Of a stretch of DNA of 64,000 nucleotides, positions 19,352-54,500 are shown one piece after another (the first letter of the stretch is position 1; every line of letters starts with the position of its first letter). The DNA comes from Paragordius varius (lineage: Eukaryota; Animalia; Nematomorpha). Below the pieces are notes generated by a model. It saw nothing but the letters and a program-made list of their open reading frames with translations. It did no database searches and was not told the DNA's origin. A program made the position numbers and the translations under genes. The DNA lies in the NCBI GenBank assembly GCA_964247055.1, contig OZ176055.1, forward strand, positions 6,262,001 through 6,326,000, read 5' to 3'.

Positions 19352-19394
<43 letters not shown>

Positions 19395-25300: not shown

Positions 25301-28300
25301 TTTTGACGAAATAGAATAGAGATGTCTTACTTTCTATACAATTTACAAAATAAAAACAAAATATACTATACTTGTTCTTTTGTCGCTGATAATGTAGGTT
25401 GTTGCATTCCATTTTCATCTTGTTGGACTGCTGGAAATTGATCTTTTGTATCAGTATCAGAAAGGGAAATGCGTGAAGATGATGCGTTTGAAGTGGAAAA
25501 ATCTTCCATCATGCTTGCTTCTGTAAATTTTCATAATATGATAAAAAAATTTCTATAACTAACGAACGACATTTTATTTTGTGAGAATCAGTCTAATTCA
25601 TGTCCGAATCGAAAAAAAACTAAAAATCTAAGTTTATTATTATAAATAATATGTTATGATATTGGTAATATTAAATAATATATACATAAGCAATTTATAT
25701 AATAAATTTAAATTATATAAGTTTGTTTAACATTTTGATCAAGAATATATAGATAATTTTACCATATCAAAAAATATGGTAGGAGATAGAATGAAAAACT
25801 ATGCTAAACCTCGAAACTGTACAATTTTAACATTACTATCAGCCCTGGGCAAATAAAGCTTTTTATCCCTAACTGATAGGCCCTTAACTTTCAATGAAAA
25901 AAAGAAAACAAGAGAATCTGCCCTCCATAATTTATTTTAATAACCAACGTTAATAATTGGAATTATGGTTAGGATTTTTACCGGATATCGGAGCCGGTCA
26001 AAAGCAGGACGGTCATAGTTAGTGATTAATACCCTAACACAAATCAGTGTTCCAAAAAATAAAATACTAAAGTTAACCAATCACTAGTAATTTTTTGAGG
26101 ATTTCATCTATTTTTACGATTTCATAATAAAGAATGGTTTGTCTGAATAACATGCATTACAAATCAACTGGTAATTTCGATTAATTAAAATACCGGCAAG
26201 ACCCAATCCTAATTACAATCGATAATTATTATGTCTCATCATACCAGAAGCACTGGAATGCGAAGATGATAAAAGAGACATTTTGTCCTCTAACATAGGT
26301 AGCTTATTGTGGCGAATCCCATGGTGCTGAGATTTTCCTACAGAAAATGGTTGGTGTTGTTGTGATTCTGAAGTGGATTTGATAACACTTTGAATACTAG
26401 TAGTAGGAGTCGTATAATTAAGGCGAGAGGCAGAAGCATACTTTTTAGCACCTATCAAAGGATATTGCACATCTTTACCATCAACATTGTGTAAATCATT
26501 GTAAGCGTGGCTATTTTGGGCTGCATCAAAAAAATCTTGATCTAGATTATGTGGGGAAGAAAAATGTTTAAATTTTGGTTTTGAGAATACTAAATATAAT
26601 GATTCATTAAAACAGCGTGGTTTAACGGACAAACAACAATATGATGAATGATTGTAAAACGAAAAAAAAACAAATTATGCTTGGGAAAATTATCTTTCGT
26701 GTAGTACATGTTGCATATTGTATGCGAGCATAAAACAACTTGCATAAGATTTTGGTCATAATTTGTATAGAATCCTAACCTAAACTATGTTGCGTCAAAG
26801 CCGTAGGCACATACGGTTCAGAGGTTTTCTTCGCCGTAACTTTTTTGGATAATCTTTTTTCTCCGCCCATGTTTTTGTTTGTAGCGATTGCTTTAGAAGG
26901 GAATTGTTCATCACTTTCTACCGCTTGTGTTTGTGATAATCTACGATCTCTAAGATTGGCATACAAAGCACTATTGCTTGTATTACTCGTCTTTTGCTGA
27001 GCATTAACAGTTTGCTGGCTTTGTTTGGTCATTGAACGGAGCAAGAGATTGGAACATTGGGTAGCCAGGTTAATGGCATCCATCCAACATTTACCTTCAT
27101 TAATTATTACATTAAAAGTGTAGAATTAAGAGAGCAAAATTTTAGGTTTCTTCTTGAGGTGGTCAGATTAAAAAAATATATAGAGCGTTTGGTTAAATCC
27201 TTATCCAAAATCAATTATATAGAATTTTTCCATGTGATTAAACAATTTTTAATCACATAAATGGCTGACATAAACATAGTCAGAAAATTTTGCCGTATCC
27301 AAAAGAAAATAAAAAAATAAATTCTTAATTTACGTAAAACAGGTTTTTGTAAAATATTTGTTTATTTTGATGAAGGACTGTAAACTATAATTAAGATATT
27401 TATATATTATATAATGTTTAAATAGATTGGCTAAAAATTTACCGCAAAAAATATAAAAAGTGGTAATATAAAAAACAAAAAGGTCGCTACTAACTAAACA
27501 ATGTTAATATTAGCTAGATTTTTAAGATTATTAAATCATATTACAAAAATACTCTCAACTAAATCCAACCACATAAATAAATGCAAGAAATAATCTTATG
27601 ATTAAGATATTTAATTGCATGTGCGTACCAATCAAATTACTTAATTATATAAAATGGTTTCATAAACTATAATATATATGAAAACGTAATTACACACATT
27701 AGTAAATTGTATGACAAAGTGCAATTTTCGGAGATAATTTCCAAAAGATAAAAAAGACTTAATGAATTATTAAAAAAATTAAATGCTTTTATATGTGTGT
27801 GTTCATAAATGACGAAATGAATTAACTAAAAAAATAATCAATAAAAAAATGCTAACAAAAATATATCTATGAAAAAATAAAAAAATAATCATATACCTGC
27901 ATCTTCATTTGTAGCTCTAAATATTAAGTAAGCCGATGGTAGTGGGATAGTAAGGGCTCCAATTGTTTCCCCTTTTGGCCCCTAAGATTAAAATATATTT
28001 GTTGTTGAAAAATTAATTAAATTTTAAAAAATTATGACAACATTAAATTTAATGATACCTTAGATGTCCAAATAGATTCACCCATGCTATGAAAAATTTT
28101 GAAACAAAATCCAGCCTTTTTTGATGGTCGCTCAATTACGTGACACGATGTTAGAAGTATGGTCCCAACCCATTTTCCATTCTAATTTTAATTTTTATAA
28201 ATACTTTTTCGGGTGTGTTATTGTATAATATCATGACGCCAGGTTTAAGTATACAATATAATTTCGTCCATCCCTTTAAACTGCCTCGGACCTTTAACCA

Positions 28301-28463
28301 ATCCGATAAAATTATGACAGATGGATCATTTAGTAAATCTAAAAATTGCTGGGCTGCTTTATGTTTTTCAGCTAAATAATTTTGTTTTTGCACCTTTATA
28401 TTACTAATATTAAACTTTGTGGGATGGCTTTCTATTTAAATTCGTGTCCGATACTGTTGTCAT
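17253..28463 (-). CDS. OSBPL8: Oxysterol-binding protein-related protein, ORP5/ORP8 type (20 exons, ~1005 aa)
   Basis: Exons (minus): 28463-28416, 28393-28205, 28181-28059, 27981-27897, 27094-26780, 26589-26245, 25520-25372, 25096-25000, 24552-24381, 24219-24138, 23463-23365, 20646-20550, 19859-19663, 19350-19225, 18835-18738, 18629-18479, 18382-18246, 18103-17971, 17722-17548, 17452-17253. All introns GT-AG and in frame. PH domain (SDWLKVRGSLKGWTKLYCILKPG), ORD motifs LPTFILEPRSFLDKL, KKPYNP and EQVSHHPP, RPWDPLND, and C-terminal TM tail VIVLSLVFFILQIFIIYYLRR. This is the single ORP5/8 co-orthologue type, so the symbol is approximate. Confidence 0.93.
19352..19392. repeat. (TA)n microsatellite; similar runs at ~4479, 19866, 20340, 20702, 33890, 42819 and 43520
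   Basis: Direct inspection. Confidence 0.9.
19903..20085 (+). mobile_element. 5'-truncated RTE-clade LINE 3' end (antisense, in an ORP5/8 intron)
   Basis: Translates ILFGLVDGTRRRGRPKKRWIDVLKSITNL...QDRLKWRTLI...SL*, the typical RTE/BovB C-terminus (GRRRRGR..RW.D...DR..WR), followed directly by a short (CAA)n tail. Confidence 0.75.
20762..23206. mobile_element. Two degenerate Penelope-like element fragments in inverted (head-to-head) orientation
   Basis: Plus copy ~21900-23206: RT motifs MGLALSPMADIFME (22080), RYVDD (~22169) and LSFLDVLI, then GIY-YIG-like GPGI.EIACSC...EQTGR (~22690-22760). Segment 20762-~21750 is the reverse complement of ~22185-23206 with many substitutions. Both lie in the 2718-nt ORP5/8 intron. 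Confidence 0.8.
28182..28204 (-). other. 23-nt micro-intron (ORP5/8 intron 2)
   Basis: gtatttataaaaattaaaattag; removal joins ...YNNTPEK|NGKWVGTILL, restoring the conserved PH-domain sequence. Retention frameshifts to a stop. Confidence 0.9.
28394..28415 (-). other. 22-nt micro-intron (ORP5/8 intron 1)
   Basis: gtttaatattagtaatataaag; joins MTTVSDTNLNRKPSHK|VQKQNY (compare ORP8 KKESLK-VQKKNY) and supplies the only nearby in-frame ATG. Confidence 0.8.
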
Positions 28464-29198
28464 ATGGTAATATACTAAATCTCATATGTTTGCATTCCTG
28501 ATGATTATATAAATTTTGAATTGATTTTTTAGCGCAACATTATGATAATGTTAGCTGCTTTTTGGAATTATATAATATATATGATAATAAAAACATTAGG
28601 ATTAAGTTATATTTTTAATGAAAGATGCGATTTATAGGCTAAAAAAACATTTTTGAATTTGGCCCAATACCTTTAACACTTAGATCTAAAACATTATTGT
28701 TAGATACCCCAGATTGGTTTAAAATTTGACATTTTAAAAAATATAGGGGCACTTACATAACATTAATGTACCAAAATATAAAAAAAGGTTTATTAATAGT
28801 AGATAATAATAATAAAATGGTGAAAGATAAAGGTAAAAATTTAGCCAGCATGACATGTGTGCATAACTTAAAGATGAAAATAATGCGTATCATACCACTT
28901 TCTCTATTTATATCAATGTTAAATGTGATTATAATAAAAAAGTAAACTTAATTTTGGACTTGGAATCAAATAAACACGATATTTTGCAAAAATGTTGTAA
29001 AATAAAAATAGCTTCCAAGTGTTTGATACGGATTTTTTTAAAAACAAATTTTTATTTACATATTATATTTAGGATAAAAGCATATTAAATTAAAACCGTT
29101 TTTTTTTCAATTTCAAAAATATCAAATTAAATATTCAATTCAAATCAAAGTGTTATTAATCCTTATAATAACCAAATTGGATAGTTTTGGGGTATACC

Positions 29199-32100
29199 TA
29201 AGGTGACCAGACGTCCCGCTCTTTCACACTTTGTCCCGCGTCCCGCTGCGTTTTTAAAATGTCCCGCTTTTTCACGATTATATAAAAAAAATTTTTTTTA
29301 ATACAAATAAATTTTTTTTATCCGTTTAAATTTTTTATCATTAAATATCTTTAACACTTCGTTTCAAATTGGGGTATCTAAATACCCCAGACTGAATTTA
29401 AATTAAAATTTTTAAAAAACTACTGAAGGAAACGGTCCCAATTTAAATTTATACTTCTATCCTGATAAATATTATATAAATATGCCAAAATATCTTGATA
29501 AAATTTTGTTTTGAAAAAAAAGTTCCATCACAAACTACTTCGACGCCATTTTTATTTTGCAAAATATTGTCTTCATTTAATTTTAAGGGTAAAACTAAAG
29601 CTTATTTTTTATATAAATTTCTAACATTGATAGAAATAAAAATAGCGGTTTATTTTGTATTATTTTTAAATTTTACAATTTGACACATGTCAGGTTGATT
29701 AAATTTTTACCTTTCGGTTTAAGCTTAAAATAAGTAATATCAAGTATTTTTGAATAAAATTTTTTATATATTTCGGTTTATTAATGTTATATAAGTGCAA
29801 AATTTTGCCATGGTTTTGATTGCTTCCATACTTTTTAAAGTATTTGATTTTAAACAGGCCTGGGGTATCCAACTACCCCAATTTGAATCGAAGGACTAAA
29901 ATGAGTGTGTTGCATCCAAGTGTTAAAATCTATATAAATTTTAAATTAAAATGTTTTATTTTTAAATTAAAAATATTTATTTTCTTCGAATTTATATTAT
30001 ATGATAATACACTTTCCTTCCTACTACTACTGTCATCATTATTAAAAAGCCAAGTTAACACCACAAATCTCTAGATTAAAAGACAAATTGATACCCCAAA
30101 TCGGTACCTTACACGTTTCTTCCAGAAAATTAAGGTAATATAATATTTTTTACACTAATAGTAGTTTATAAATATGAGCACAAAAAGAGGTTGTAAATTC
30201 AACGATGAATTAATGAAAGATTTTTCTTTTATCAAAAAAACAAGAATGAATCATCTGTTAAATGTCTTATATGCGAGGGGGAATTCACCCTAGCACATGG
30301 CGGCAAACATGATATTACAAAGCATATGGAAACACAGAAACATAAAAAATGTTTAGATATGGCGGCATCATCTTACAAAATGAGCGATTTTTTTGAAAAC
30401 CGCTTTTGGAGAGTAAGAAAAGAATTTGGCACTAGCTGAGGGCGTGTTATCCTTTCATGCCCTTAATCACAATCATTCTTTTAGATCTATGGACTGTACC
30501 TCACAGGTTATTCGCACGTTATTCCATAAAAAATAAGGCTGAAGCCATGTGCAATGTCCTTTCGCCACATGCATTTTCTGAAATACAAAAAGATTTGCTA
30601 AAAATTAATTTCTTTTCCCTATACTCTGATACTTCATGACACCATGAAACAAAATTATTTCCCACTTTGATAAGATATTTTGATTCAGAAACCTGAGTAA
30701 AAATTAAAATTTTAGATTTAATTTCCCTACCCGGTGAAAATTCCGAAATAATATTTACTTCAATAATGCATATTCTAGAAAAAAATAATTTAAAAGACAA
30801 AATTATCGCATATTGCGCTGACAACACCAATACGAACTTTGGTGGAAAAGCAAGAAGGGGACCAAAAAATATTTTTCATAAATTAACAGATAATCTTAAT
30901 CAAAACATTATTGGCGTTGGGTGTGCAGCGCATATAATACACAACGCTATTCAAACAGCTGCTGATTTGTTACCCCTAGATGTGGAAAATGTAGTTGTTA
31001 AAATATATTCCTATTTTTATATATACACGGTACGTGTTGAAACGCTTAAAGAATTTTGTGAAAATGCAAAAGTTCAATATCAAAAAATGCTTGGATATTG
31101 TAAAACTCGTTGGTTAACTTTTATGTCAGGTATCGAAAGAATTTTAAAATTGTATGATCCTTTAAAATCTTTTTTTTATCACAGGACAAATGTCCTACAA
31201 CTTTAAAAAATTTTTTTGAAAGTGATTCTTCAAAAATATGGTTAGAATTCTTACATATTCAAGCTTCTCTCTTTCAAAATGTTGTTAAATTTATAGAAGG
31301 TGGCAAAATTTCGGCAATTGAAGTAGCCATTGATAGTAACCTAAAATTCCAATGTCAAGAACGGTTAGAAAATAATTTTATACCATAAACCCGACATACA
31401 ATAAATAATTTAGAAAAACAAGGCTTAATAAATCGCCAAGTCCTGTACCATATAAAAATGTTTTATACAAACTGTAAGACTGAACGACGCAATTTAATGA
31501 AATTGATCATTTTCATTGGATAACATTTAAATAAGAATTTAATTGGTGCTCGAAAATCATTTGGTTATATCTGCTCCCAAAAATTATCAAAAATTCAGAA
31601 AATGATCTTTTTTCTGAAGTATCATTAGTTAAAAGATATATTAATAATGAAAAACTTAAATTATGGACAAAAGAAAAATATGCAGTAGAAAAGAAATGGT
31701 TGAAATATTTTATCATTTTGAAGCCAACTATATTACATACAATAATATTTTAAAAATTGTGGAATTCGCACTATCTTTACCTGGAACCAACGCTGCTACT
31801 AAGCGCGTTTTTTCCACAGTAAATCAGGTGTAGAAATCGGAAAAATCAAATTTAAATGTTGAAACTTTAAAGGCCGTTTTATATGTCAAATATAATTTGA
31901 CAAATTCTGAAGACTTCTACAATATTTTAAAAAATGATGACAATCTACTAAAACGCATTCATTCAAACAAAATATACCAAAGAATAAGATATTTTCTTTA
32001 AAGTTTTTGTGTTAAAAAATAAACAAAATTACTTAAAATATATAAGTCTTCATAATTTGTCAAATTATATTTGAACACATAAAATGGCTATTTAACATTT

Positions 32101-32982
32101 AAATTTGATTCCGTGTCCTTTCTACTGTGGAAAACGCCTTCAATAGCAGTGGTTCAGGTAAAGATAATGCAAATTCCACAATTAAAATATTATTGTATGA
32201 AACATAATTTGTTTAAAAATGATTATTTTAACCATTTCTATCCTACGTATTTTTTTATGTTGTCCATAATATAAGTTTTCATTCAATATATTTATTTAAT
32301 AATGAGACTTCATAAAAAAGGTCATTGTGCACCGTCTTGTCTTCCAAATAATCGTTTCTGTTTGTATAAAACATTTTTATATTCTGGCTATTCATTGAGC
32401 CTTGTTTTTCTAGATGATTTATAATATTGCGATTAGGTAATGGTATAAAATTATTTTCTAACCTTTTTTGACTTGGAATTTTGACCTTTGTGCTGTGATA
32501 AAAAATAGGATTCTAAGAGATCACATTTTCATAAATGTATCAATCGCTGGCAAAAGAGCAAACCAACAGTTCTACAATATCCCATTTTAACATCTATATT
32601 TTCCACATCCAGGGGTAACAAATCAGTAGCTGTTTGAAATGCGTTGTGTATCTGCCAATATAATGTTTTGATTAAGATTATTCGCTAAATTGTTAAAAAT
32701 ATTTGTGCCGCTTCTTGCATCACCCAGCGCACTTTGTGATGATTTCGTCTTTATTATTTTTTTCTAGAATATACTTCACCCTTTGTTCGTGCACATGTAA
32801 ATTTATTGAATAAAATGTAAACAACCTGTAAGGTACAATTTTTTATATTTATAATTTGTGTTAAAAATAAATAAATATTACAATAAATTTTTTGTATAAA
32901 AATTTTTGGTTGTACCCCCCAATGACCCCCCCCCCTTCTCAGATTTGTCCCGCTTTTTCCTTCAAAAAATCTGGTCACCTTA
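29199..32982 (+). mobile_element. hAT-Blackjack-like DNA transposon, 3784 bp, with disrupted transposase
   Basis: Perfect 13-bp TIRs TAAGGTGACCAGA / TCTGGTCACCTTA and a perfect 8-bp TSD GGTATACC (29191-29198, 32983-32990). Transposase remnants ~30174-31990: BED-like finger, YCADNTNTNFGG, GCAAHIIHN, KTRWL and hATC LSLPGTNAAT.RVFS, with several frameshifts and stops. Confidence 0.92.
29355..29922 (+). mobile_element. piggyBac-like MITE (568 bp) nested in the hAT element
   Basis: Flanked by TTAA on both sides (29351-54, 29923-26). Ends CACTT...AAGTG. The ~20-bp inverted repeat CTTCG(T/A)TTCAAATTGGGGTA is terminal on the left and set inward by a spacer on the right, an asymmetry typical of piggyBac. 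Confidence 0.8.
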
Positions 32983-33886
32983 GGTATACCAAAATTTAAT
33001 GGACTGTTAGTAATACAATTCGGAGAACGGTTTTTTTATACAAAAAAGGTATGAGGTCATAAAAAATAAAAAATGGACAATATTGGTTATAAATTCACAA
33101 TAATAGTTTCTGGCCCCTAAGTTAAAACCCATCTATTGTAAAAACAGGGGTTTTAAAAAAGGTTCTTGAAAAACGGGTCTTTAAGATATTTTTCTGGAAG
33201 GTTGTGTCCCGAATATTTATATTACGAATGCATCTATCACAGCCTGGCCATTGTTCAAAATAAGCATCTGCATTGGCCCTCATCTTCATAAATGACATTT
33301 TTGCAAAGAAACGAAGTCGACAAAAATAATTTACTAAGTTATAATTTGCCTAGCCACAATGCGTTCTAAATCGGGGGCATAATAAATTGGTGAAATATAT
33401 AGTTTGATAGGAAAAACTATCAACATAATGCATTTGATTTTGGGAAGTAAGTTATCTATTCTTATGTCTTGAGGCTCCATATCAGAAAATGGCAAAATTT
33501 GGGCAAATATTTTTGCAATAAGGCCAAATGCTTTATTGTATAAAATATCATTAAATAGTATTATTATAAACTACCGATAAAAAGCAAAATATATTTTCTA
33601 AAATATCTTGATTTTTAGATGTGGGCTTTAAATATCCATTTTTTGTTCTTCTAAATTCGCTAGTTTTTTAAAAAAATTTACGCAAAAATACCAGGATTGT
33701 GCGATAGTGACATCCAAAAAATTTTAAAAAAATGCGTACCTTATATAAAAATTTAATTTTTAACAAAATTTTGTTGACATCCTATTTTTAGGCATGATGA
33801 AAACGGTATAAAAAGCTTTTGGATATTACAAAAAACTATTTCTATATAACAATGCGTCCAAATTGGGGGGTATAAAAATATCCTGA

Positions 33887-33920
<34 letters not shown>

Positions 33921-36349: not shown

Positions 36350-37742
36350 TTAATGATGATGGGCATATTTGTGATAATTTTTGTGAAAATGTTTTTTGTA
36401 TATGTGATAAGGGGAATATCGATAATGCTTAAATTTATGTTCATGATTTCCATACGCCTTATAGAGTGTGCCGAGGTAAGAATAAGAATCATGTGGATTA
36501 CCAAATTTGTGATTTTTATTGTTATAGGTGGAAAACCCACGTTTGCTGTGAAATCCAATAATGTTTCCATCTTTGGAGTATCCACCCTTAACTATCATAA
36601 CATAAATTATTTATATTAGTTAAAGAAAAAATTTATATTTATAGGGAAAAAATGGTAATAATAATAATTTATTATGCGACATATTTTGTCATATTTAAAA
36701 CACTAAATTTAGCTAATACGATATAAAAAGAAGCGTTTACATTAATTGTTGGATTGGCATTCTCATAATATAAACGCTGCTAATCAAACCTATGTAAATG
36801 GCACATTTTTATACCCAATTTTCAAAACACGTTCCTTATTAAAAACTTATTTTTTGTTTCAATATATGTTTGATACCATGTAGCCCGTGATAAAAGCCAA
36901 TCTTTTTTAGAAATCGGTAAAATTGATTGTCCCCACTGTATTGTTGTTGTCTTCGATAACCGTCTCTATCAGTATTGGCATGATTCTTTTTATAAGCACT
37001 GAAAAGGGAATTCATATATTCCAAACTATTGTCCTTACCATAACTGTAAATGACAAAATTATGATAAAATAATAAATTAAAGGTTCAGTAACCCTAATTA
37101 TAGATAGCAATCTCACAAAAACACTAATTTAAAAGTATTAAACATTTAAAATAAATTATTCAACCTTAAATTTTGTCAAAATTTGATGTCATTAAATAAT
37201 TTTATTATTAATTGATTAATTTCGTTTTTTACGTATTCTAATTTTAGTATGACTGGTTATACTATGATAAATATTTCATTTGAAAGGTAATTAAACCAAT
37301 TAATATTGTTTAATTGGTAAACCTTACCCTATATATATTCTGGTATCGGGCTCAAGATAGTAAATATACAAATTTATTCATATATAGTTATTAATCAAGA
37401 AATAAATCATATTAATCAAATAATAAGGGGATGATTTAAAAAAAAATTCTATAAAAAATCAATCACTAAAAAATTAAGGTTAGCACAGATTAAATATCTA
37501 AACGCGAACAAGGTCAATCATTATAAAATTTAAGTGAATGAAAGTGGTTTATTTTTAAGTTTTTTTTACTCATCATCCTCTTCAGGTGAATCGTAATGAG
37601 AATAATCTTCTTCATATTTATAACCATGTCCAAAATCCAAGCATTTAACTCTATGGTTCCGTGCAATGTAATTTATGAACAATAAAAATAAGGGTAGGAA
37701 TAATGTTAATTGTAAATAACCATATAAATATTTTTGATTCAT
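36350..37742 (-). CDS. Orphan secreted His/Tyr/Lys-rich protein (3 exons, ~193 aa)
   Basis: Exons 37742-37570, 37043-36877, 36591-36350; GT-AG introns of 526 and 285 nt (phases 2 and 1), frame continuous. Hydrophobic signal-like N-terminus, acidic Tyr block (YEEDYSHYDSPEEDDDY), and a C-terminus ending HYRYSPYHIYKKHFHKNYHKYAHHH. Confidence 0.75.
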
Positions 37743-38273: not shown

Positions 38274-40375
38274 TTATTTAAATGGGTTATCTGGTATAAA
38301 ATTATCGCTTATACATGGCTGTTTTGACAATATTTCTAAATTTTCATCTTTACCAAAAGAATTTGCTTGATTGACCACCAAAGAGTTACCGCCATCCTTT
38401 TCGGTGCTTTGGACATTAAGAAGTAATTTATCATAACGTTCCGCTAAATACTTTTTTCGCTGGAGTAATTCATCTAAACTTAATTTTTGTGTTGTATCAT
38501 CAACAAAATTATCATAATTTTGATGGTTATCAACAAGCGAAGGTAGTTTTCGATACCCACTACCACCATCAATTTTATTCGAATCAACCGTACTCTTAGG
38601 TGATATATGAATATGTAAAATATCATTCCTATTTTCAATGTTTGTGTCAACGCTGTATTCATTATTATATGTATTTTTAGGTAAAACATTTGGTCCTGGA
38701 ATGTCATCCATGGAATTATCAAGAGAGACTGAAGGTGATTCTGTTGTATTGTTAGTATAAGGCCCAAATTGGCGGCTCTAAAATATAAGTCAATCAATAT
38801 TTCAGTTATTGAAGACGAATAATTAGAGATGTACAGTATGCATATTTTTGTGGCTTATTCACATTATTGTTTGATCAAGTGGGTTATAAACTGAGTTTGT
38901 CCAGAAATAAAAAACAAATTTATGTTGTTAAATAAAGAAAAATTGTTTCTTTTTACCATTTTTATGTCTTTTGCCATACACTACTGTGTTGCCAATTGCA
39001 ATAATGTGAGTAAGCCAGCATAAAAATTCAATACTATATGAAACAGTATCAATTTATTAAATTATTTATAAAACTGAATTGTTTATGCCTAAAACATTGA
39101 CCATTATCTTAGTATCTTGTTAATTGACTCTATGCCGGAGTAAAAAAACTCAAGTAATTTCATAGCTCAATTGTTTTTTTGGATGATAAATTTAAAGTCA
39201 CCATTTTTGTGGCTAAAAAATCGGATCCTTGCGTAACTCAAAAAGTGGGAGGAAATTAGAATTATATAAAATGTATTTTATGGCTTTACATATATAAATT
39301 TGATTTGCATGGGCCGTAGTAATAATAAACACGTTTTTTTAGTAACGTTACTGTTCGAAAAAGTATAATAGAGTGTTATTTTGGCTTATGTAAAAATTAG
39401 ACCAAAAAATAAAATATTGAGAATATGCTGTGTATTATGCGAGATTGTTTCAAAAACGTATCCTTGACTATATATTACGCAATTTATAATGAAAAAAAGT
39501 CATTTTTTTAACTTTACTAAAATTTCTACTAACTTAAGAATAAAAAAAATTTTGCGAAAATTATATTTTAGGAATAATTCGGTATTATCAACACTAAAAA
39601 ATTTACATACTATTAATCAAATATTTAAAATGGATTATCTGATTTAGGTTTATTGAGTCATTTAATTTTAATATGTAAACATATTGAATCATATACTTTT
39701 TCGGTTAAAATGGGTGAATCTTCAAACTTGATTTCATTTTTCGAAATACTTATAGCCTATGATTTATAATTTTATTAACCTTTTCCAATAGTTTTTGTTC
39801 GACTTTATACCGTTTTTGCAAAATTTGATATTCAGTTTTTGAGAGTTTTTTAACCTTTTCAATATCGTTTTCAAACGCTTCCATCTCGGTTTTATTTTGT
39901 ATTTCAAAAGCCTCCTTAGATAATCTACTTTTATTAAATATATACTTGAGTGCTTGTTTGAAATCTGAATCATTATCATAATCGGTGCAATGTAAAATGG
40001 GGGTAAATTTTTGTAAATTATTGGTTATATATTTAAAAATAGCAATATCGTAGATGGCAAAGATTGGTAATATAATACTCTATAAAATTATTGGCTAAAA
40101 ACCTCAAAACTTGCATTTATTTTATTTTTCGATAACATGAGATTCATAATTTTATCCCTTTCTATTTCTTGTTCGGCTAGAAAATCATTCATGATTGGTT
40201 CAAACTACCAAAATATATTAATTAAAACCTTCTCCTTATAAAATATATGATATGCAAGGATGTAGTCGTCATCAGGTATCGATTTGTAATTTGTAAAAAA
40301 ATTAAAAATTTCAGTTTTCCATAATGAAGTATTGGCAAATGACACCAAGGATTCTATCAGCCAATCCTCTTCCAT
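38274..40375 (-). CDS. CFAP36: Diverged cilia- and flagella-associated protein 36 (BART-domain, CCDC104) (4 exons, ~350 aa)
   Basis: Exons 40375-40229, 40204-40103, 40079-39780, 38777-38274. N-terminus MEEDWLIESLVSFANTSLWKTEIFNFF resembles CFAP36 [37 protein letters not shown] resembles ILQPVLAAEDFTIF; C-terminal DELLQRKKYLAERYDKLL resembles the QREEYLRQQRDKL motif. Length is similar to the known protein. Confidence 0.72.
40080..40102 (-). other. 23-nt micro-intron (CFAP36 intron 2)
   Basis: gtttttagccaataattttatag; phase 0; retention gives an in-frame TAA; removal opens a further 100-codon exon. Confidence 0.8.
40205..40228 (-). other. 24-nt micro-intron (CFAP36 intron 1)
   Basis: gttttaattaatatattttggtag; length is 3n but it ends in an in-frame TAG, so it must be spliced. 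Joins YKEK|FEPIMNDFL. Confidence 0.8.
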
Positions 40376-44374: not shown

Positions 44375-45103
44375 CTAGGCAACATAAGGGCTTGTGTACT
44401 GTTTAGCCAATACTGTTTTTAACACATTCGTGTACGTATAATCAGTCAGCGTATTGAATTGTAATTCAATGTACACGCCAGACAGGCATTTCAGTAGGGC
44501 ACTTTTACTCGCTATGTAAAACATTTTGTCTCTCATGCTAGCCTCAGGCGACATCCAAAGGAAAAAAATAAGTTTACTTGAAGTTTGATTCGTAGTTGGA
44601 TTAAGATAGGTGAAATCGGTTAACACGTATCTACACTGCCCGGCATCTGATATATGAATAAGCTCTTGCCAAAGTGTTTCGTGCGAAGTTTGATCATCAA
44701 ATATTTTTTCTACTTGAATATGCGTTACACATTTATCCGTATTCGCCTTTCCTGGTTCACTATCCATAGCATTTTGATCATTTACCACATTAAATATGAT
44801 ACTTTTAATCTGTTTCTCCATTTTCAGGGTTTGAAAGGTGTTCAAACAATCCTCATGCAAAGAAATACTATGTGAACTTGTCTTACTAATCGAATTTGTA
44901 AGATGACCTTTACCTCTTTTGTCTTTCAATAAGTCATGAAACTTACTTTTACTAACTTTCATATCATAATTATCCAAGGCTTGGTGTGATGTACTTTGGG
45001 AGCCAATTTTAACATCCAGGTATGATCCTTTGGTTGAAGCTAAGCAATCATTGGTACTATTATCATATCTAAATGAATGAGTATTTGCTGTGATGTAAGG
45101 CAT
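44375..45103 (-). CDS. Intronless ADF/cofilin-family protein with ~75-aa N-terminal extension (242 aa from first ATG)
   Basis: ADF-H motifs: SISLHEDCLNTFQTLK, IIFNV, CRYVLTDF, KLIFFLWMSPEASMRDKMFYIASKSAL. First ATG at 45103; the ORF-track start at 45151 is TTG in a T-rich tract. Confidence 0.85.
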   Translation of the reverse strand: MPYITANTHSFRYDNSTNDCLASTKGSYLDVKIGSQSTSHQALDNYDMKVSKSKFHDLLKDKRGKGHLTNSISKTSSHSISLHEDCLNTFQTLKMEKQIKSIIFNVVNDQNAMDSEPGKANTDKCVTHIQVEKIFDDQTSHETLWQELIHISDAGQCRYVLTDFTYLNPTTNQTSSKLIFFLWMSPEASMRDKMFYIASKSALLKCLSGVYIELQFNTLTDYTYTNVLKTVLAKQYTSPYVA

Positions 45104-46399
45104 GGTTTTTGAAGCATAAAAATAAAAAAGTAAAAATAAAAAAAAATTCAAATCATATCGTTTAAGAATGTGTTTAAGGTTAAAATAAACTAAGTTCTAA
45201 ATTATTATAAGCTATATCATTTAATTATAAATTAAATGGCAAGTAATTTTATGAAGTTTATATATATCTATGTCATTACCACCCAGCTTAATTCCGATGA
45301 AAAATTATAAATCAATAAAAAATATTTAGGTTAAAAATTCACTTTTAATTTGATAATTAAATTAACTAAGGAGGAAAAAATTTTGCTTACAATAACTAAT
45401 CCATAAAATATCATATCCATAATGCATATCTTTAAAAAAATAAAAATTTATATAGAGTTAACAATTTATATTCAAATATAGCGCTTTACATCAGTTTATG
45501 CACGGCTTTAAAATATTGCTCTTTTTAGAATAATTCATATATTTGCAAAAATGATAATTTTCCAAGACTAAGGTATTCCGAAATACCAATCAAAAGAATT
45601 AAGAATTTAATCTTTTTACTAGCATTGTGAGTAATGTTAATAATGGCACTAAATGTTAACCTAATAGAAATATTGATAAAAAAAATAAAAATATCTTTTA
45701 TAAATGCCATAAATCTAAAAATGATTAATATATAAATACGTTTTGCCATGTTACTATTGCGGAAGGATTTCAAGTAATTTTGTTTTAATGAATTAAAGAA
45801 AGTATATTACTTTTTATATATAGTGAACATTAAAAATTTATTTCACAAAATTATATTTAAATAATATACAAAAATCCGTTTAAGTAACGCCCAGTAATTG
45901 TGAGAAAAATAGCGATATTTCTGGGAGACTAAAAAACCTAAACAGTTACAGTTCAAAAATAGTATAGGTCTGGGTTTTTGGTGAAATATTTACATTTCTG
46001 ATAAATCTATAAAAGTATATTTTTGGAATAGTTAGACGGATATTCATCAATAAACCTGTCAAGCGTTGTTTAAGGCAGAAAATTATAATTTAAAACCAGG
46101 TTGTCACTGTATAATAAAATTATTATACACTATAAAATTAAATAAGGTAGAGCTTGCTTCTGCGCAAGCATATTATTTATGTAATTGTAATTTAATTTTA
46201 TTAAGGGTATTTAAACGTTTTGTAATTGGCTATGCAATTTCAATTTCATTAGTAGCCATCTATCTATTTGCATATACCAGCTCCAGTCATAATTAGTTAT
46301 CAGTTTAACCAAGAAAAAGCAAGAAAAATGCAGCCGATTAACTTCACGCCATTTCGCTCACATAACAGACGAAAACATATATGGTGATTCTGTCAAAAC

Positions 46400-47250
46400 T
46401 AGCGTCTTACTTATTGTTAAATTTGTTGAAACCTGTGCCTGAAAAAGAACACTTGCTGCCATTGCCATCAGAAGAAAAAGGCTGTCGAAAATTGGTTGGT
46501 AGAAACATATGGAAAACATGTTCAATTAATTAAAATGTGCATGTTTTGAAAAATTAAAAGGTTGTCTTTTTCGAGGCTCTCTGGTAGACGAGAGTGATTA
46601 TCCGACTTCAATCAAGGAATTGGCAGGAGCATTACATGTATCACGAAAAACAATTGGTATACGTCCACGCGCATTGGGAAAGTTTAATAAACTCTGTAAA
46701 TGGGTAACACACACAATTTGAATGAACGTCGAATCAAAAATTGGAAAGGGTCCTGAGAAACCCAAAGGAAATTATTTTGCATAGAATTGTTACGGGTGAC
46801 AAGAAGTGGCTTTACTCAGTCAATTCAAAACGGAAAAAAAACGCCCCTTTCCCTTCCCAAGCCGATCTATCAACATCAAGACCAAATTCCTTCGTCAAGA
46901 TTATGTTTCATTTCTGGTGGGACCAGATCGGTATTGTATATCATAAACTTTTGAAGGAAATCATACATTAATGGAAAAACGACCAAAAAGTCCAGATGAC
47001 ATAGCAAAATGATTTTGCTACAAGACAATGCTACGACCGCAAAAACAGTGAAAAACAATTAATAATCTTTGATATAGAATCCGCACTGAACTCCGTTCAC
47101 TAGCCATCTGACTATTATCTCTTCTCTCAATAAGGCACCTCAGAGTGCAACGCTTGAATATTTCACTTTGGAAAATGACTTAACGAATGGATGTTCAAAA
47201 AATAAAATCGGTTTTTCTAGCAACGTGGAAGCCGATGAATGATACTTTAT
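46400..47250 (+). mobile_element. Degenerate mariner transposon relic
   Basis: Fragments PTSIKELAGALHVSRKTI (HTH-like), LHRIVTGDKKWLY, FWWDQIGIVYHKLL and LLQDNATTAK (LHDNA-like), with frameshifts. TIRs not established. Confidence 0.8.
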
Positions 47251-48929
47251 ATAATATACAAAAAACAGGTAAGACTCATGACTTCAACTAGTAAATAAAC
47301 ACTGTATAGCCTTTTAAGCGTGTTATTCAAAAAATTCATTGTAAATTTGTCCCTATATTTACGTTTTTATAATCGCTATTAAAATTTGGTATATTATTTA
47401 AAGGTTTTTTAGTGGAATTCAAATATTTTATTATAAATTATCAGATATTTTTATAGTAATTTTAATATAATCTTTTATATGGATTATGAAAGAATTTAAG
47501 TTTTGACGATAGAAGTTACAAAATGTTGCTTTTTTGACAGAGAATTAACCTAATATATTTTTAATACGTCTAAAAAGTATGTATTTTAACATAAATCTTA
47601 TGCAAGTGCTAACGCACAATACCGGTAAAATATTATTTTATCTATTATAAAGCGTATGATTTTTTTTGAAATTTAATTTTAGGAGTCCTCAAAATATAAT
47701 CATAAAAATGCCGAAATAAAACTGGATTTGTATTTTTAGCCCAAGATATAATATTGGAGGTTTAAAAATTCAGGACCATGATTTAATAAATTTTTTTACG
47801 CTTTTTTTTTATAAAAAAGGCCCTGACCATGATGTCATTTATAAAAAAAAAATTATATCATAATGGGACATCCATTGCGTTTCCGGGAATCGATACAATA
47901 TATAAAATATGTTAAGGGTCTCTTAAGGAGCAATAAAGCCTAAACTCATAAGCATCATGGAACATGGCATAAAATAAATAATTCATTGATGTATAAAATA
48001 CATTTTATTATTTTTTTTAAATCTATATAATTATAAAAATGAGTAAACAATATATCAGTACGAATGCACCGTTTTGAAATTCCTATGAGATCATAGCTAT
48101 TAAATAATGTTTGGAAATAATTCATATATGTGGATCATTTTATTGTCCCTTTGAGATTTACGCTAGTAACCTATATATATATAGAGGATGCAGATTAAGA
48201 ATATGCGCATACCTAAATAAAAAGCAGTTATGTCTAAATGAAACAAACCAATATTTCTATGATTATATAGATAAGTGATACTCAAATGGCGGCTCTAAAA
48301 GGCGTCCTGATTTAAATCTTTTTGATTGCTTAAAAATATGACCAATATTTATTTTTTTAAAAAAATTCCGTGTTTTTCGCAATAAGACAATTTTATTATA
48401 TGAAAAAGATTTCCTGCTGTTTTCTTTGATACTTATACTATCGATAATGTTATAGGAAATTAAAGGAATTCGCAGAGGATAAGGTTTTTGGCAAGATGTG
48501 CCAAATATATATTTAATAATAAAATAGTTATAGTATGTTAAAAGACAAAGGGATTATAGATTGGTTTGATAATTAGATTTGTCAATAAATAGCGGTTTAT
48601 ATTAAATTATGTCCATTTTACAAAGATTATATGATCAAAATATTAGTATATAACCCGCAAAAATCTAGGTGTACTAATTTACCTTATGGGTATACCAGGA
48701 TTAAAGTAATACAGTATTTGTCGGTATTATACTGTGGCCTTTAAGGCAAAAAACTTATTAAATCCGTTAAATTGGGTGAGTATCATTGATATAGATTTTA
48801 ATGACATAATATAGAAAAAAACATATATTCGGTATATAATAATAAAATAATCTAAATTCCGATTACGATTTCTTCAATTTTATTTGTAAACAAAATATTA
48901 ATAATATGATATATAAGAGTAAAATAATA

Positions 48930-49273
48930 TTAATCTTCAGATTCTGCAATAATTTTTAAGCAATCTCTTGCTAGCATCTTGTGAGGAATTATGTCTTGTA
49001 AAAACTCATAAACTTCATTAGAATTTACAACTTCGGCAAGATTTTTATAAGTTATATCATGAGAATCAGCATCCTTAAAACAAGATTTTGAAAGATTGGT
49101 TATAAAGAGTTCCTTAAAATTAAAAAAATATTTACTGTGGCTTTTGAAATTATAAAGAGTGAGTCTTCGCTTATATTATTTAGCTTCTCAATGTCTGGAG
49201 AACTCTTTATAATGGTTTTGATGCGACTAAATGGAAGTAAAGGGAACGCCTTATGTTTATCCCAAAAACTCAT
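48930..49273 (-). CDS. CHRAC1: Chromatin accessibility complex histone-fold subunit CHRAC1 (CHRAC15/16) (2 exons, 106 aa)
   Basis: Exons 49273-49136 and 49112-48930: MSFWDKHKAFPLLPFSRIKTIIKSSPDIEK...IISKAT|ELFITNLSK...ITYKNLAEVV...YEFLQDIIPHK. KSSP and FL.DI.P.K distinguish CHRAC1 from POLE4 and NF-YC. Confidence 0.88.
49113..49135 (-). other. 23-nt micro-intron (CHRAC1 sole intron)
   Basis: gtaaatatttttttaattttaag; splits the highly conserved histone-fold KAT|ELF exactly in phase 0. Retention frameshifts to a stop. Confidence 0.92.
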
Positions 49274-49367
49274 TGAATTAATGTACACACATATTACAGA
49301 TGTATCTAAACTTCAGATGGTCTTCATGCTGGGTAGTTTAATATCTATGCTTATTATATTATATTAA

Positions 49368-49949
49368 CACTTGGATACAACACACTCATTTTAGTCCTTC
49401 GATTCAAATTGGGGTAGTTGGATACCCCAGGCCTGTTTAAAATCAAATACTTTAAAAAGTATGGAAGCAATCAAAACCATGGCAAAATTTTGCACTTATA
49501 TAACATTAATTAACCGAAATATATAAAAAATTTTATTCAAAAATACTTGATATTACTTATTTTGAGCTAAAACTGAAAGGTAAAAATTTAGTCAACGTGA
49601 CATGTGTTAAATTGTAAAATTAAAAAATAATACAAAATAAACCGCTTTTTCTATTTCTATCCATGTTAGATGTAATTTATATAAAAAATAAGCTTTAGTT
49701 TTACCCTTAAAATTAAATGAAGTCGATATTTTGCAAAATTTTTGTAAAATAAAAATGGCGTCGAAGTAGTTTGAGATGAAACTTTTTTTTCAAAACAAAA
49801 TTTTATCAGGATATTTTGGCATATTTACATAATATTCATCAAGATAGAAGCATAAATTCAAATTGGGACCGTTTCCTTCAGTAGTTTTTTAAAAATTTAA
49901 ATTTAAATTTAGTCTGGGGTATTTAGATACCCCAATTTGAATCGAAGTG
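49368..49949 (-). mobile_element. piggyBac-like MITE (582 bp), second copy
   Basis: Near-identical reverse complement of 29355-29922; TTAA at 49364-67 and 49950-53; lies 95 bp upstream of the CHRAC1 ATG. Confidence 0.85.
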
Positions 49950-51542
49950 TTAAAAATCACATAATTTTGCTAAAAATTTTGTTTTACATTTCTCGATACG
50001 TTAAACTTGGCATTTTTTTAGAAAAAAAATTAAATTGGGTATGTCAGCAATTTTTTTTGGCATTTATTGATGTTAAAATTTTATTTTAAACTCTGTTTTT
50101 GGGCAGGAACCTGAGAGCAAAGTGTCTGTTTAATGCATTATGACATCTTCAGATTTGAATAATGGCCTAGTTTCTCCAAAGCTCCAACTTGTGAAACTAG
50201 TGTTTTGAAATTGCTTTTGTTATCAAACATCGCTCCACTATATTAGATAGAAAATATATAATTTACAGTTTTAGAACAACAAGATTCCAGAGTCTGTAAT
50301 CAGGACATCTCCAAATCACTAGTGAAATAAACAGTTAATATATTAAAATTAATAAAATAAAGTTTTAGTAAAATGCAGTCTGAAAGGTTATTAAAGTAAG
50401 TTACATTTGGCGATATAAAAAAATTAGGGAAAAAAATTGCGGCGAAAAAGATTAAGACGAGGTTTTATTGAAAAAAGTTTTTTACGCATGCGAATTAAAA
50501 GCTAGCGAAAACATATTTTTGAATTTAACCGATTACCTCTAAAGTTAAAATCTCTCGATAAACACAAAAGGTCATAAAGTATACAGACTACCAAAAAAAT
50601 TGGACCTACCCCATTAATATATTTTTTTTGGCTTTTTCTGAGGTTAAAAGAAGTAGGATTCCCAATAGATTTGGCTCTTTAATGATACATTTTCATGATA
50701 ATGATCTTATCACTTCAATGATGCCGCAATTAGATGGCAATCTAAATATTTTAAAACCTAAGAGATTGAATAAAGTATTAAATACCAATTTGGAATTAAA
50801 ATTATAAATATATTTAAAAAATAAAATTGTAAATCTTTATCTAAAAGCTTCAATATACTAATATTTTATTCAACACAAATGTTGATGTTACAATGTTTTT
50901 TTGCTATTACGAAGATGTAATTTAGTCAGCTTTTATGGTTAGAGTAGTGGATATTACCTGTTAGAATGTTAGCCTCTTGTCCCTTAAGTAAAATTATAAA
51001 TTTAACGCGTTATGAAGCCCTCATTATCACATGAGCTGACATTCTATGTTTGCTCGGCGTGCTGAAAGATAGAAACCTTATTTAGACCAATAGATATATG
51101 TCAAATTTGATTTATAATTTCAGTTTTTTTGACTTTATGCTAATTTCTCAAATATCACATTTCGAAAGCATTACATCACTATTGTAGTGTCCAACTCTGT
51201 GCGTAAAAATTCTTAAGAACATCAGAGATTTGATTAGTCTAATTATGGTAAGTACACTGTGAAGGACTTAAAAAATTAGTTATTTTTATCTACATTTTAG
51301 ATTCTTATAATTAAGTTATGCTAGTTATGCATGTTCTTTTTATAAGCCTAGAAGGCCCTAAAATGCGTGATTATTGCTAAAATAAACAAATAATTTTTGG
51401 GTTTCGTTTTCTAATAAAGGGATAAATTATTTCAAACGTTAAAAATTTGATTATTTTTTATTTTTTTTAAAACAAAACTAATACTAAATTATCTTCTCAT
51501 TTAGCTAAAAACTTATATTTCTGAGTTCACTGAAAACGTGAA

Positions 51543-51567
51543 TTGGCGCTGATTTCAAAGTTCAAAA
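51543..51567 (+). promoter_or_regulatory. Candidate E2F/CDE plus CHR (DREAM-type) element upstream of TopBP1
   Basis: TTGGCGC (51543-49) followed after 3 nt by TTTCAAA (51553-59) and a second TTCAAA (the reverse complement of CHR TTTGAA), 17-40 nt before the ATG. Motif match only. Confidence 0.35.
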
Positions 51568-51583
51568 TACATATGTTATCGAT

Positions 51584-54500
51584 ATGGAAAGAGTTGTAGA
51601 TCAAAATTATTTTTATTTTATTAAATCTAATACCGGGATCGGCGATATTTTGTTGTCAGCTTACAAAGTTTATATATATTTAAGTATATTTAGTCTTTAG
51701 AAAATAATGGATATCTGGTAAAATGGGTAGCCGAGCATGAAAGCATTGACATAATAAAATCTTTTTGCAAAACAAGCATCGTTTTTTTCATATGTGAAAA
51801 CTTTGAAAACAAATTTTTTGAAACTGTTTTGCAATTTCAGTCCCAACATATTAAGTATATTTAAATATGTAATAAATATAGATTATTGGGACCGTCAGTT
51901 ATATTATCTTGTTTGATCGAAAATTTACCAATTCCTAATTGGGAAGTACCAATTCATAATATGGCAATGAATGGAATGGTTGTATGTTGCACAAATATTA
52001 ATAATGACCAAAGAGTAATTAAGAATTTTTATAAATAAATAATTTATCATTAATGAACAAACAAATATGTGTTTTATAGTCTGAAATCTTTCAACTTGTA
52101 TCTCGAATGAAAGGGGAAGTTTTATTACATTTAACCTCATCAGTAACGCATCTTGTGACTGGCCGAGTTGGTTCAAAGAAATTTTTGATTGCACAACAAT
52201 TGGATATTCCAATTTATCAACCAACCTGGGTTTATAGCGCTTGGAAGCGTTCACAATCTGAGTAAGCTATTAATGGAACAAATATTGTTTAAATGGTTTT
52301 TATTTAAATACCTTTTTTAACTCTCACGAAACTTTATAAAGGGTAAGTAAATATTTGGATCTAAGTCAACTTACGACAAATTTATTTTTTATTAACCAAT
52401 TATCCAAAATTAACTCACTTTTTATTATTACGCATCATTAACTAATTTTATGTTAAATTTTTTATGTGCCTTTTTAGAATTATAAATGCCGATGATCCTA
52501 GTTTTAGTGGTGATAAATGCCCACTTTTCTTTGGTTTGATTATTACACTCACTCAATTTGATTCGGAAATGCGCAATCAAGCTAAAGAATGGATTGAAGA
52601 AAATGGTAATATTTTGATTTAAAAATTTTCCAAGATTTTAATATAATTATTTGGTATTTTTTAAAAAAATTAAAACTGATTTAATTAAAAATTATTGCGT
52701 TAAAGGGGGAACATATACGGGCGAAATGAAAATGAACCATGCCACCCACCTCATAGCCAAAGAACCAACAGGTTTTGAAACATATATTTTTTTTTTATTT
52801 TTTTTAAACAATAAAACATTTTTATTTTTTACATTTTTTTCGACAAAAAGGTACCAAATATGTCCATGCATGTAAATGGAAGAATATCCATATAGTTTCA
52901 TGGGCATGGTTGGAGGATTGCGTTCAACAATCAAAATTTTTAGATGAAACACCCTATCTATTGACTACCTCTACTACGATAAATAATAATAATAATAATA
53001 ATTTTAGTGCTAAAAATCATCCAACAATAGAGAAAAGCTTAGAGATATCAAAAAGTAACCCATCAGGAGATCTTATAAAGGATACAAAAATTGAATCTTA
53101 TCTTGCAAAGACGAATGATGGTGATTTACAACATACAACTAATTCAAACTTTACAACAATAATGACTAATTTAGGTTTTTTAAGGATATATTTTAAAGAC
53201 GTATTTTATATAAAAAATTTATTTATACCATAATTATTTTTTAGGTGATAAGAATCCAAGGCATATGAATTCTGAGAATCGTAGATCGTCATCTAATTTT
53301 AACATAGATTTTGAGGTTCCTGATATGCAACAAAACATGAATGATAAACCTGAAAAACGGTATTTTCTCATCATATTTTAATAAACGCTACTTTAAAATT
53401 GGAGTAATTTTTTTTGTATGGATATATTTCCAATATTAAAATGTGAATTTGTATCAATAAATACAATATAATTATTGGTCATTAATTATAGTTTTTTTTA
53501 ATTCTTATACTAAAGAACCACTGAAACTATGGCTAAACCCATGTTTGACAATGTGGTTAAAAATTTGATACAGCAATATCGGAAAGAATCTATCGACCCT
53601 ATGGAAAGCATTGATATCGATCTCAAAACTCATAATTCTGAGATGGAAAATAAATTAAAAGCACCCATTCCATCTTTTATCGCCGAAACAACTAATAATC
53701 CTGGTTAGTATTTTTATTAACAAATAATTTCGAAGATTTATAAACCGATGAGAGTGTTGAAATATATTAAATTATTTTTATAAATTATAGATGAATCAAA
53801 TATTTCTTTTATTCAGCCTGAAGGAATATCCTTTTTGAATACACCCACGAGTAATATAATTATGATAATAATAATTCATATTGCCTTTTTTTCATTATAT
53901 ATATATATTAGATTATAATTTATTATTGTTTTTCTGAAAAAACTTTTAAATCCTTTTAAAAAATTTAATTTAATGTTATATTAATTTACATTTCTATTGT
54001 TGTAACTATAGCTGGTGTTGTAAGAAATCAAAGTTATATGGTTTTTCTCTTTTCAACTTAAAATTTTTTTGTCTCATACACTTAAAATTTTTTATCTTTT
54101 TTATCTCTTATTTTTTACTGCATTATATATATTTATGCATATGTAAAAGGAGGAAAACCCGATGTATTTAATGGTAAAACTTTCTTACTTTTCCAACCCT
54201 TGTCCGATGATATCGTTAGCGGTTATGCTAAAATAACCCTCATGGATTGTGATGATTTATGTAAAAAGATTAAATGGTTAAGGGGTGTCCCACTCAAACG
54301 TGCAACCAAAAAGAATAAAGATACGATCGATTACATAGTTTGTCCCTTCTCATTAATCCCCTGTGCTAAAGAACAGAAACAAAAGCATACTGCCATAGCA
54401 ACGAATCAAGTAAATACGCTCTTTTTTTACAATGTTAGGATATTTTTTAATTTTTAAGGCTAAATATTTTTTTTAAAAAAACAGAGTTTTATTCATATTT

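Follow-up and report, generated by a model that had tools for sequence, protein, structure and literature searches.

The window analysed here is a stretch of 64,000 nucleotides (64 kb) from the genome of the hairworm Paragordius varius (phylum Nematomorpha; assembly GCA_964247055.1, contig OZ176055.1, positions 6,262,001 to 6,326,000), in which animal genes split by GT-AG introns lie together with hAT, mariner and miniature inverted-repeat transposable elements (MITEs). Its G+C content is 27%, it is rich in transposons and about 13% of it is covered by repeats that recur within the window itself. Six of its genes were rebuilt, and the subject of this study is the size of their introns, among them seven introns of only 22 to 27 nt (micro-introns hereafter) that are carried by four of these genes: an ORP5/8 gene with 19 introns, a TopBP1 gene with 28 introns that runs off the window, a CFAP36-like gene with three introns and a CHRAC1 gene with a single one. 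The two other genes, which encode an ankyrin-repeat protein and a His-rich protein, have two introns each. All six curated models keep open frames and each of the 55 introns, the seven micro-introns included, starts with GT and ends with AG.

A simple scan for GT..AG segments of 18-45 nt with open frames on both sides returned 576 matches and was of no use, and exon chaining took its place. A codon log-odds table was trained on obvious exons and then fed into a dynamic programme that chains exons using codon and splice-site scores. This predictor is blind to position along a gene, and its output was corrected manually where conserved motifs exposed errors. The coordinates of the features are collected in the table below, where positions in the coding sequence (CDS) are counted from the ATG.

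Table. Genes and introns of the Paragordius varius window (window coordinates; + and - give the strand)
Feature	Position	Strand	Remarks
ORP5/8 gene, 20 exons, 19 introns	17253..28463	-	curated open frame, ORD motifs, C-terminal membrane anchor
ORP5/8 intron 1, 22 nt, phase 0, CDS +48	28394..28415	-	GT-AG; joins 16-codon ATG exon to PH-domain exon
ORP5/8 intron 2, 23 nt, phase 0, CDS +237	28182..28204	-	PH-domain homology on both sides
ORP5/8 intron 3, 77 nt, CDS +360	27982..28058	-	first ordinary-sized intron of the gene
CFAP36-like intron 1, 24 nt, phase 0, CDS +147	40205..40228	-	ends in in-frame TAG; frame logic and predictor
CFAP36-like intron 2, 23 nt, phase 0, CDS +249	40080..40102	-	frame logic and predictor
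CFAP36-like intron 3, 1002 nt, CDS +549	38778..39779	-	alternative: 23-nt intron 39757-39779, 60-nt exon, 919-nt intron
CHRAC1 intron, 23 nt, phase 0, CDS +138	49113..49135	-	sole intron of the gene; domain and homologue continuity
TopBP1 gene, ~29 exons, downstream introns 65-1002 nt	51584..64000, runs off window	+	curated model
TopBP1 intron 1, 26 nt, phase 0, CDS +84	51668..51693	+	gapless against Gordionus TopBP1 (SAYK|SLEN vs SAYNSLIN)
TopBP1 intron 2, 27 nt, phase 2, CDS +245	51855..51881	+	in-frame TAA; exon 3 homology
TopBP1 intron 3, 65 nt, CDS +378	52015..52079	+	smallest ordinary intron of the window; curated model
Ankyrin-repeat gene intron 1, 4816 nt, CDS +399	3604..8419	+	first intron, long, far from ATG; Pfam Ank on exon 3
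His-rich gene intron 1, 526 nt, CDS +173	37044..37569	-	single exception; predictor model
Cofilin/ADF gene	44378-45103	-	no intron

Arranged in rising order, the intron lengths are 22, 23, 23, 23, 24, 26, 27, 65, 69, 70, 77, 79, 81, 84, 87, 95, 96, 100, 108 ... 4816 nt. Thus, none of the 55 introns measures between 28 and 64 nt, while 12 ordinary ones fall between 65 and 108 nt. The 48 ordinary introns (65-4816 nt) have a floor at about 65 nt and a median of about 280 nt, the median of all 55 being about 250 nt.

As the earlier note on this stretch had proposed, the size class of an intron depends strongly on how far into the gene it lies, counted from the ATG: seven of the eight introns within +250 of the ATG are micro-introns, against 0 of 47 beyond that point (Fisher p = 3.9e-8), a downstream count to be read as about 47 +/- 3, given the doubt over a few small exons in poorly conserved parts of TopBP1. 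The positions that the note had given for the seven micro-introns were all reproduced exactly, and so were the positions and sizes of the next introns in the same genes (77 nt at +360, 1002 nt at +549 and 65 nt at +378), of the first ankyrin intron and of the one exception, in the His-rich gene. Its count of seven in eight near the ATG also stood, and only its downstream figure of 0 of 46 had to be changed, to 0 of 47 in the rebuilt models. The donor sites of the seven micro-introns lie 48-273 genomic nt from the ATG, or at most 249 coding nt, and in every gene that has micro-introns they come before any other intron (5.2e-6 under random placement in the ORP5/8, TopBP1 and CFAP36-like genes). 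The closest ordinary introns in genes with micro-introns are one of 77 nt at a distance of 405 nt from the ATG and one of 65 nt at 431 nt. The switch of size class is sharp and lies in the interval from 273 to about 400 genomic nt past the ATG. Since these two introns are the smallest or near-smallest ordinary ones, there is also a hint of a size gradient past the step. The first intron of the ankyrin-repeat gene, at +399, is already 4.8 kb long, which argues that distance rather than intron number is the relevant variable. Altogether, the pattern is confirmed and statistically solid within the window, and this polarity very probably extends to the genome as a whole.

The 19 introns of the ORP5/8 gene measure, from the ATG onwards, 22, 23, 77, 802, 190, 727, 275, 447, 161, 674, 2718, 690, 312, 389, 108, 96, 142, 248 and 95 nt. 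All high-scoring segment pairs (HSPs) with homologues, among them the open reading frames (ORFs) of a cDNA-like ORP contig, fall on curated exons and none in an intron, the homologue runs on without a break over junctions 10/11 and 12/13, and two exon ORFs match the Pfam Oxysterol_BP family. A search for homologous proteins with the ORP ORF gave three useful fragments. Once spliced, the N-terminus aligns without any gap over 120 residues with the homologue fragment P0001, across three junctions that include the one left by the 22-nt intron, and the RK.S.K residues upstream of this junction are matched in P0001. The exons on both sides of intron 2 match residues 3-37 (E 2e-12) and 40-79 (E 7e-17) of the human ORP8 PH domain. 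In an unrelated animal (locus L003), an intron of more than 290 nt interrupts the gene at the position and in the phase of ORP5/8 intron 2, and the site of intron 1 is exonic. A 23-nt intron that was predicted between two mini-exons of this gene, at about 19.9-20.0 kb, turned out to be spurious, as the ORD sequence is continuous without any insert. The linker encoded by exon 6 contains an FFAT-like motif, DQDFFDAAQ (26540-26570, minus strand). To our knowledge, ORP5/8-type proteins, which combine a PH domain with a C-terminal anchor, are without FFAT motifs. The identity of the gene was doubted over this DFFDA motif, and the ORP5/8 assignment was kept on the strength of the ORP8 PH match and of the C-terminal membrane anchor.

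In the TopBP1 gene, exon 3, which follows the 27-nt intron, matches residues 79-121 of TopBP1 chains in the PDB from end to end (E 5e-5), and exon 2 gave no match to the PDB. Exon 1 of CHRAC1 stops at position 33 of the 65 positions of the Pfam histone-fold profile CBFD_NFYB_HMF, and the two exons match, in order, residues 18-50 and 68-103 of Drosophila CHRAC-16 in a PDB search, weakly; a search for homologous proteins with the CHRAC1 ORF gave no match. One contig of the DNA run X1 carries a 1-nt insertion at 49121, in the T-run of the CHRAC1 micro-intron (which is then 24 instead of 23 nt), at about one fifth of the depth, as non-coding DNA would allow. For the CFAP36-like gene, the pieces found no match in the PDB, and searches of the ESM Atlas with exons 1 and 3 returned chance-level matches only. 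We take human CFAP36 to be colinear with the predicted protein across both micro-intron junctions.

Removal of the segment thus restores a frame that is colinear with homologues for five of the seven micro-introns (both of ORP5/8, both of TopBP1 and that of CHRAC1). Five of the seven shift the frame, and each of them either does so or holds an in-frame stop, since the two whose length is a multiple of three (24 and 27 nt) both contain a stop. Phase 0 is seen in six of seven micro-introns, compared to 19 of the 48 other introns (nominal p 0.04). Judged by their ends and frames, and in five cases by flanking homology, all seven appear to be spliceosomal GT-AG introns.

To follow the history of these introns, we turned to a second hairworm, Gordionus montsenyensis (GCA_954871325.2). 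The best match of TopBP1 in a representative library of 1.84 billion proteins is XP_065322224.1 / CAK9305023.1 from 'Gordionus sp. m RMFG-2023', with an identity of 54% over one exon and of 34% over the whole alignment. The annotated TopBP1 protein CAK9305023.1 was mapped exactly onto the G. montsenyensis DNA, and the comparison covers three genes: TopBP1, the adjoining CHRAC1, of which exon 1 is 85% identical, and a neighbouring gene of 166 residues. The spliced N-terminus of Paragordius TopBP1 can be aligned with its Gordionus counterpart across both micro-intron junctions. TopBP1 introns share position and phase between the two species at alignment columns 92, 136 and 197, and the CHRAC1 intron lies after SKAT in both. 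The Gordionus orthologue of TopBP1 intron 2, at the same codon and in the same phase 2, measures 2142 nt compared to 27 nt in Paragordius; the next intron measures 60 nt compared to 65 nt and the one after 7442 nt compared to 216 nt. The CHRAC1 intron, found after an identical residue, is 92 nt long in Gordionus and 23 nt long in Paragordius. Of the last 12 nt of the micro-intron, 11 are identical to those that close the 92-nt intron; this would fit an internal deletion that kept the sequence close to the splice site and, in such AT-rich sequence, is suggestive only.

Introns of less than 30 bp are thus found at positions common to other species in three cases (ORP5/8 intron 2, TopBP1 intron 2 and the CHRAC1 intron), so that at least three micro-introns are old introns. 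By alignment with Gordionus, at least two micro-introns shrank in place after the split from this lineage (from 2142 to 27 nt and from 92 to 23 nt). TopBP1 intron 1 (26 nt) has no counterpart in Gordionus, where the first exon is continuous over residues 1-84 (locus L004, 1501-1752). The two introns nearest to an ATG, TopBP1 intron 1 and ORP5/8 intron 1, may be gains specific to the Paragordius lineage or losses in the compared species. Besides resizing, introns have been gained or lost between the two hairworms, as the second CHRAC1 intron of Gordionus (41 nt; locus L005, 48657-48697), between ...EFLQ and DIIPHK, is lacking in Paragordius, where the exon is continuous (48930-49112, minus strand).

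No micro-intron was seen in the three Gordionus genes examined, and the TopBP1 and CHRAC1 genes of this species show no 5' polarity. The 166-residue gene next to CHRAC1 (L005, 49289-49917, plus strand) has three introns, at CDS +291, +348 and +415, with lengths of some 44, 43 and 31 nt. Gordionus therefore has a mini-intron class of its own (31-44 nt), which in this gene does not start within the first 250 nt. Since the orthologous Gordionus introns are long and one micro-intron has no counterpart there, the polarity arose in the lineage of Paragordius. Base composition is alike in the two species (26.9% GC in the Gordionus genome paper and 28.5% at the locus, 27% in the window). As Gordionus combines equal AT content with long introns at equal 5' positions, neither AT-richness, nor housekeeping promoters, nor general hairworm biology can be the cause, which has to be sought in a change peculiar to the Paragordius lineage.

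Taking these observations together, we propose, with a probability of roughly 0.55, that the genome holds two discrete classes of GT-AG introns that are set by position, micro-introns (22-27 nt) within about 270 nt of the ATG and ordinary introns from about 400 nt onwards, and that this reflects a 5'-proximal regime in which selection for minimal length is combined with a mode of splicing suited to introns of about 23 nt. The first few hundred nucleotides of the transcript would be under a separate regime in this lineage. A directional pressure would drive 5'-proximal introns towards the shortest possible length, and a splicing mode tolerating introns of about 23 nt would work near the 5' end, or be needed only there, possibly with the aid of factors such as the cap-binding complex or RNA polymerase II (Pol II) in early elongation. 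Seven of the eight 5' introns sit at the floor of their class, compared to about a quarter of the downstream introns that are near theirs, which argues for a directional force specific to the 5' end. The empty gap from 28 to 64 nt speaks for two separate optima of splicing and against a single continuous scale.

Several points weigh against this proposal. The micro-introns are carried by only four genes of the window, and micro-introns with a length divisible by three and without a stop would pass as coding in poorly conserved exons. The two CFAP36 junctions, the least well supported of the seven, are placed by frame logic, the predictor and a weak Pfam match (exon 1, ARL2_Bind_BART positions 1-39, E 0.03). 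In the same gene, a candidate 23-nt intron at +549 (39757-39779) appears under laxer scoring only and would soften the 250-nt boundary; by a rough estimate, about two such 23-nt candidates would be expected by chance among some 50 donor sites. The His-rich gene, if real, violates the rule, its model having no homology support and becoming a single exon under stricter scoring. The four sequencing runs that match the window are DNA, with even depth over introns and intergenic sequence in the 5901 nt compared, so that splicing is predicted, and none of the sampled words of the window was present in the RNA-labelled runs of the species. Proximity to the cap or transcription start, which the earlier note had proposed as the ruler, is an assumption, distances having been measured from the ATG. 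The mechanisms offered in that note (the cap-binding complex, promoter-proximal Pol II, nucleosomes, selection) are not told apart by the window data, and neither are selection and a mechanistic limit.

The main rival is a purely selective one. In this evolutionary account, which is possible and which we nevertheless hold to be rather unlikely, the spliceosome removes introns of about 23 nt anywhere in a gene, strong selection for minimal length is confined to the 5'-proximal introns, and introns further down drift and gain length through insertions; premature termination, cryptic polyadenylation or silencing that spreads from transposons on the promoter side are possible selective reasons. 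It draws support from the same asymmetry, because a directional 5' force is needed when seven of eight 5' introns are at the floor and most downstream introns are far above theirs, from the repeats found within the largest introns and from the in-place shrinkage seen against Gordionus. However, it leaves unexplained why 0 of 47 downstream introns fall between 28 and 64 nt, and Gordionus, with equal AT content, tolerates a 2.1-kb intron at an equal 5' position, so that AT-richness or promoter proximity alone is insufficient. Inflation by transposons, or their exclusion from 5' introns, was also considered as the whole cause of the pattern and rejected, as intra-window repeats lie in just 2 of the 48 ordinary introns (repeat families with a single copy in the window escape this test).

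At the opposite, mechanistic end, the minimal spliceable length itself might depend on position, with a mode of splicing close to the cap or promoter that arose once the lineages of Paragordius and Gordionus had separated and that removes introns of about 23 nt which the spliceosome could not handle further down, and with some micro-introns possibly being new gains. We regard this stronger version as doubtful; if true, a position-dependent minimum would offer a naturally occurring case of a single pre-mRNA served by two spliceosomal regimes.

A third account invokes surveillance: micro-introns, with their minimal splice signals, would be prone to splicing errors and would persist only where their retention brings an early stop upstream of exon junctions, so that nonsense-mediated decay clears the errors, as is true at the 5' end. 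An analogous argument has been made for Paramecium. The frame shift or in-frame stop carried by every micro-intron, both of those divisible by three included, and the excess of phase 0 speak in favour of this account. However, the single intron of CHRAC1 is a micro-intron and has no junction downstream of it, in-frame stops are expected by chance at 27% GC, and surveillance accounts for tolerance of micro-introns rather than for the near-complete conversion of 5' introns, all of which makes it improbable as the explanation.

Still less probable, in our view, is an artefact of ascertainment, whereby downstream micro-introns were missed and such introns were noticed only where an ATG exon needed connecting. 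The predictor did skip TopBP1 exons 2-3 at one setting, which shows limited power for weak exons, micro-introns divisible by three and free of stops would read as coding, and one candidate, at CFAP36 +549, is ambiguous. However, this position-blind predictor gave only two downstream micro-introns, one of which is spurious by ORD homology, and five of the seven known micro-introns shift the frame, so that most downstream ones would be expected to reveal themselves likewise. In addition, homologue HSPs are contiguous over curated exons, and searches of TopBP1 with ten homologues (tblastn) gave no HSP inside any predicted intron, which makes hidden downstream exons flanked by micro-introns unlikely in conserved parts. 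Finally, that the 22-27-nt segments are not introns at all, but assembly errors or frameshifts in decaying genes, is scarcely credible, considering that the seven share GT-AG ends and differ little in size, that long open frames and conserved domains are retained in all four genes, that two segments coincide exactly with intron positions of another species and that contigs from DNA runs of a second individual (90-100% likeness) span CHRAC1 and the 5' end of TopBP1 with the same structure.

Some further features of the window and of the runs may be noted. The run X3, which is filed under a different organism label, contains DNA of the window at a depth of about 2-8, its contigs being mostly identical to the window wherever the sequence is unique; it may come from the same species filed under a second name, or from carry-over between samples. 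The intronless cofilin gene encodes a complete Cofilin_ADF domain (positions 1-124 of the 125 in the Pfam profile, E 6e-18) preceded by an N-terminal extension of about 85 residues, and a word-indexed homologue search with its ORF gave no match. Repeat arrays at 9.6-12.9 kb and 41.1-42.8 kb, with a unit of a few hundred nt and decayed ORFs that have peptides in common (...KKRAKLLSG.SLMIIFF...), make up much of the 13% share of intra-window repeats. A decayed copy of a mariner/Tc1-type transposase lies at 46.3-47.2 kb on the plus strand (Pfam Transposase_1 at 46726-46968) and has the peptide HRIVTGD.KWLY in common with sequence at 0.9-1.4 kb on the minus strand, and a degenerate hAT element is found at about 29.19-32.99 kb. 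A MITE-like element of about 590 nt (49364-49954), with ends of the type GGGGTATC...TACCCCA, lies 91 nt upstream of the CHRAC1 ATG; such an element is also present within TopBP1 intron 19, and related copies occur around 29.3-29.9 kb and 58.5-59.0 kb. In the DNA runs, the contig word depth summed over the element reaches about 10^6, compared to about 500 for the unique flanks, and loose contig ends coincide exactly with 49363/49364 and 49953-49955. The element would appear to represent a family of very abundant repeats.

If micro-introns are as frequent elsewhere in the genome, many hairworm genes would be cut short at the 5' end, or be left without it, by gene finders and aligners with a minimum intron length of about 20-40 nt. 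Cunha et al. are said to have claimed, in 2023, large-scale gene loss in the phylum, a claim on which missed micro-introns could bear. The Gordionus genome paper gives a BUSCO completeness of 71.6%, and missed micro-introns could add to such low hairworm values, yet the three Gordionus genes examined contained none. The word intron is never used in that paper, and a literature search on hairworm introns found nothing. A genome-wide pattern would amount to a natural experiment on minimum intron length and on the effect that proximity to the 5' end (cap, early Pol II) has on splicing, with Gordionus as a sister species for comparison that is without this state at equal intron positions.

As a general rule in eukaryotic genes, Bradnam and Korf reportedly found in 2008 that first or 5' introns are the longest. 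Intron length in the window is likewise dependent on position, but in the opposite direction. The earlier note knew of no description of a positional size switch of this kind; this does not hold, since small introns at the 5' end of genes have been published for the blood fluke Schistosoma mansoni (Berriman et al. 2009, as cited by Protasio et al. 2012, PMC3254664, which also says that such introns were missed by standard RNA-seq assemblers) and are seen in its TGR gene, with introns of 1507, 34, 33, 36, 2298 and 214 nt (PMC2873472). As in S. mansoni, small introns cluster at the 5' end in Paragordius and give way further down to introns that are hundreds to thousands of nt long, in the repeat-rich genome of a parasite. 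Unlike in S. mansoni TGR, where the small introns measure about 33-36 nt and the very first intron is long (1507 nt), those of Paragordius measure 22-27 nt and the very first introns are tiny. The hairworm polarity is thus a sharper form of one that had until now been described only in the blood fluke, where it is milder, and, flatworms and hairworms being different phyla, it is of independent origin.

As to size, introns of less than 30 bp in animals have been published only for myxobolid myxozoans and for Dicyema japonicum (Hadjez et al. 2026, PMC13644364), in which introns are short almost without exception (median 22-27 bp) and genomes compact, with no effect of position reported. Nematomorpha or gordiids are nowhere mentioned in the text of that comparison of 51 metazoan genomes (PMC13644364). 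Like Myxobolidae and Dicyema, Paragordius has GT-AG introns of 20-30 nt in an animal genome, at conserved positions between conserved exons. Unlike in these lineages, the 55 introns have a median length of about 250 nt, seven of them make up the micro class, which is found at gene starts only, and the surrounding sequence is repeat-rich, so that the genome-wide shortening of the two other lineages is not what is seen here. Hairworms would make a third animal lineage with introns of less than 30 nt, beside the two recognised in 2026 (PMC13644364), and their case joins two published phenomena, the 5' polarity of small introns and introns of less than 30 nt, in a new phylum.

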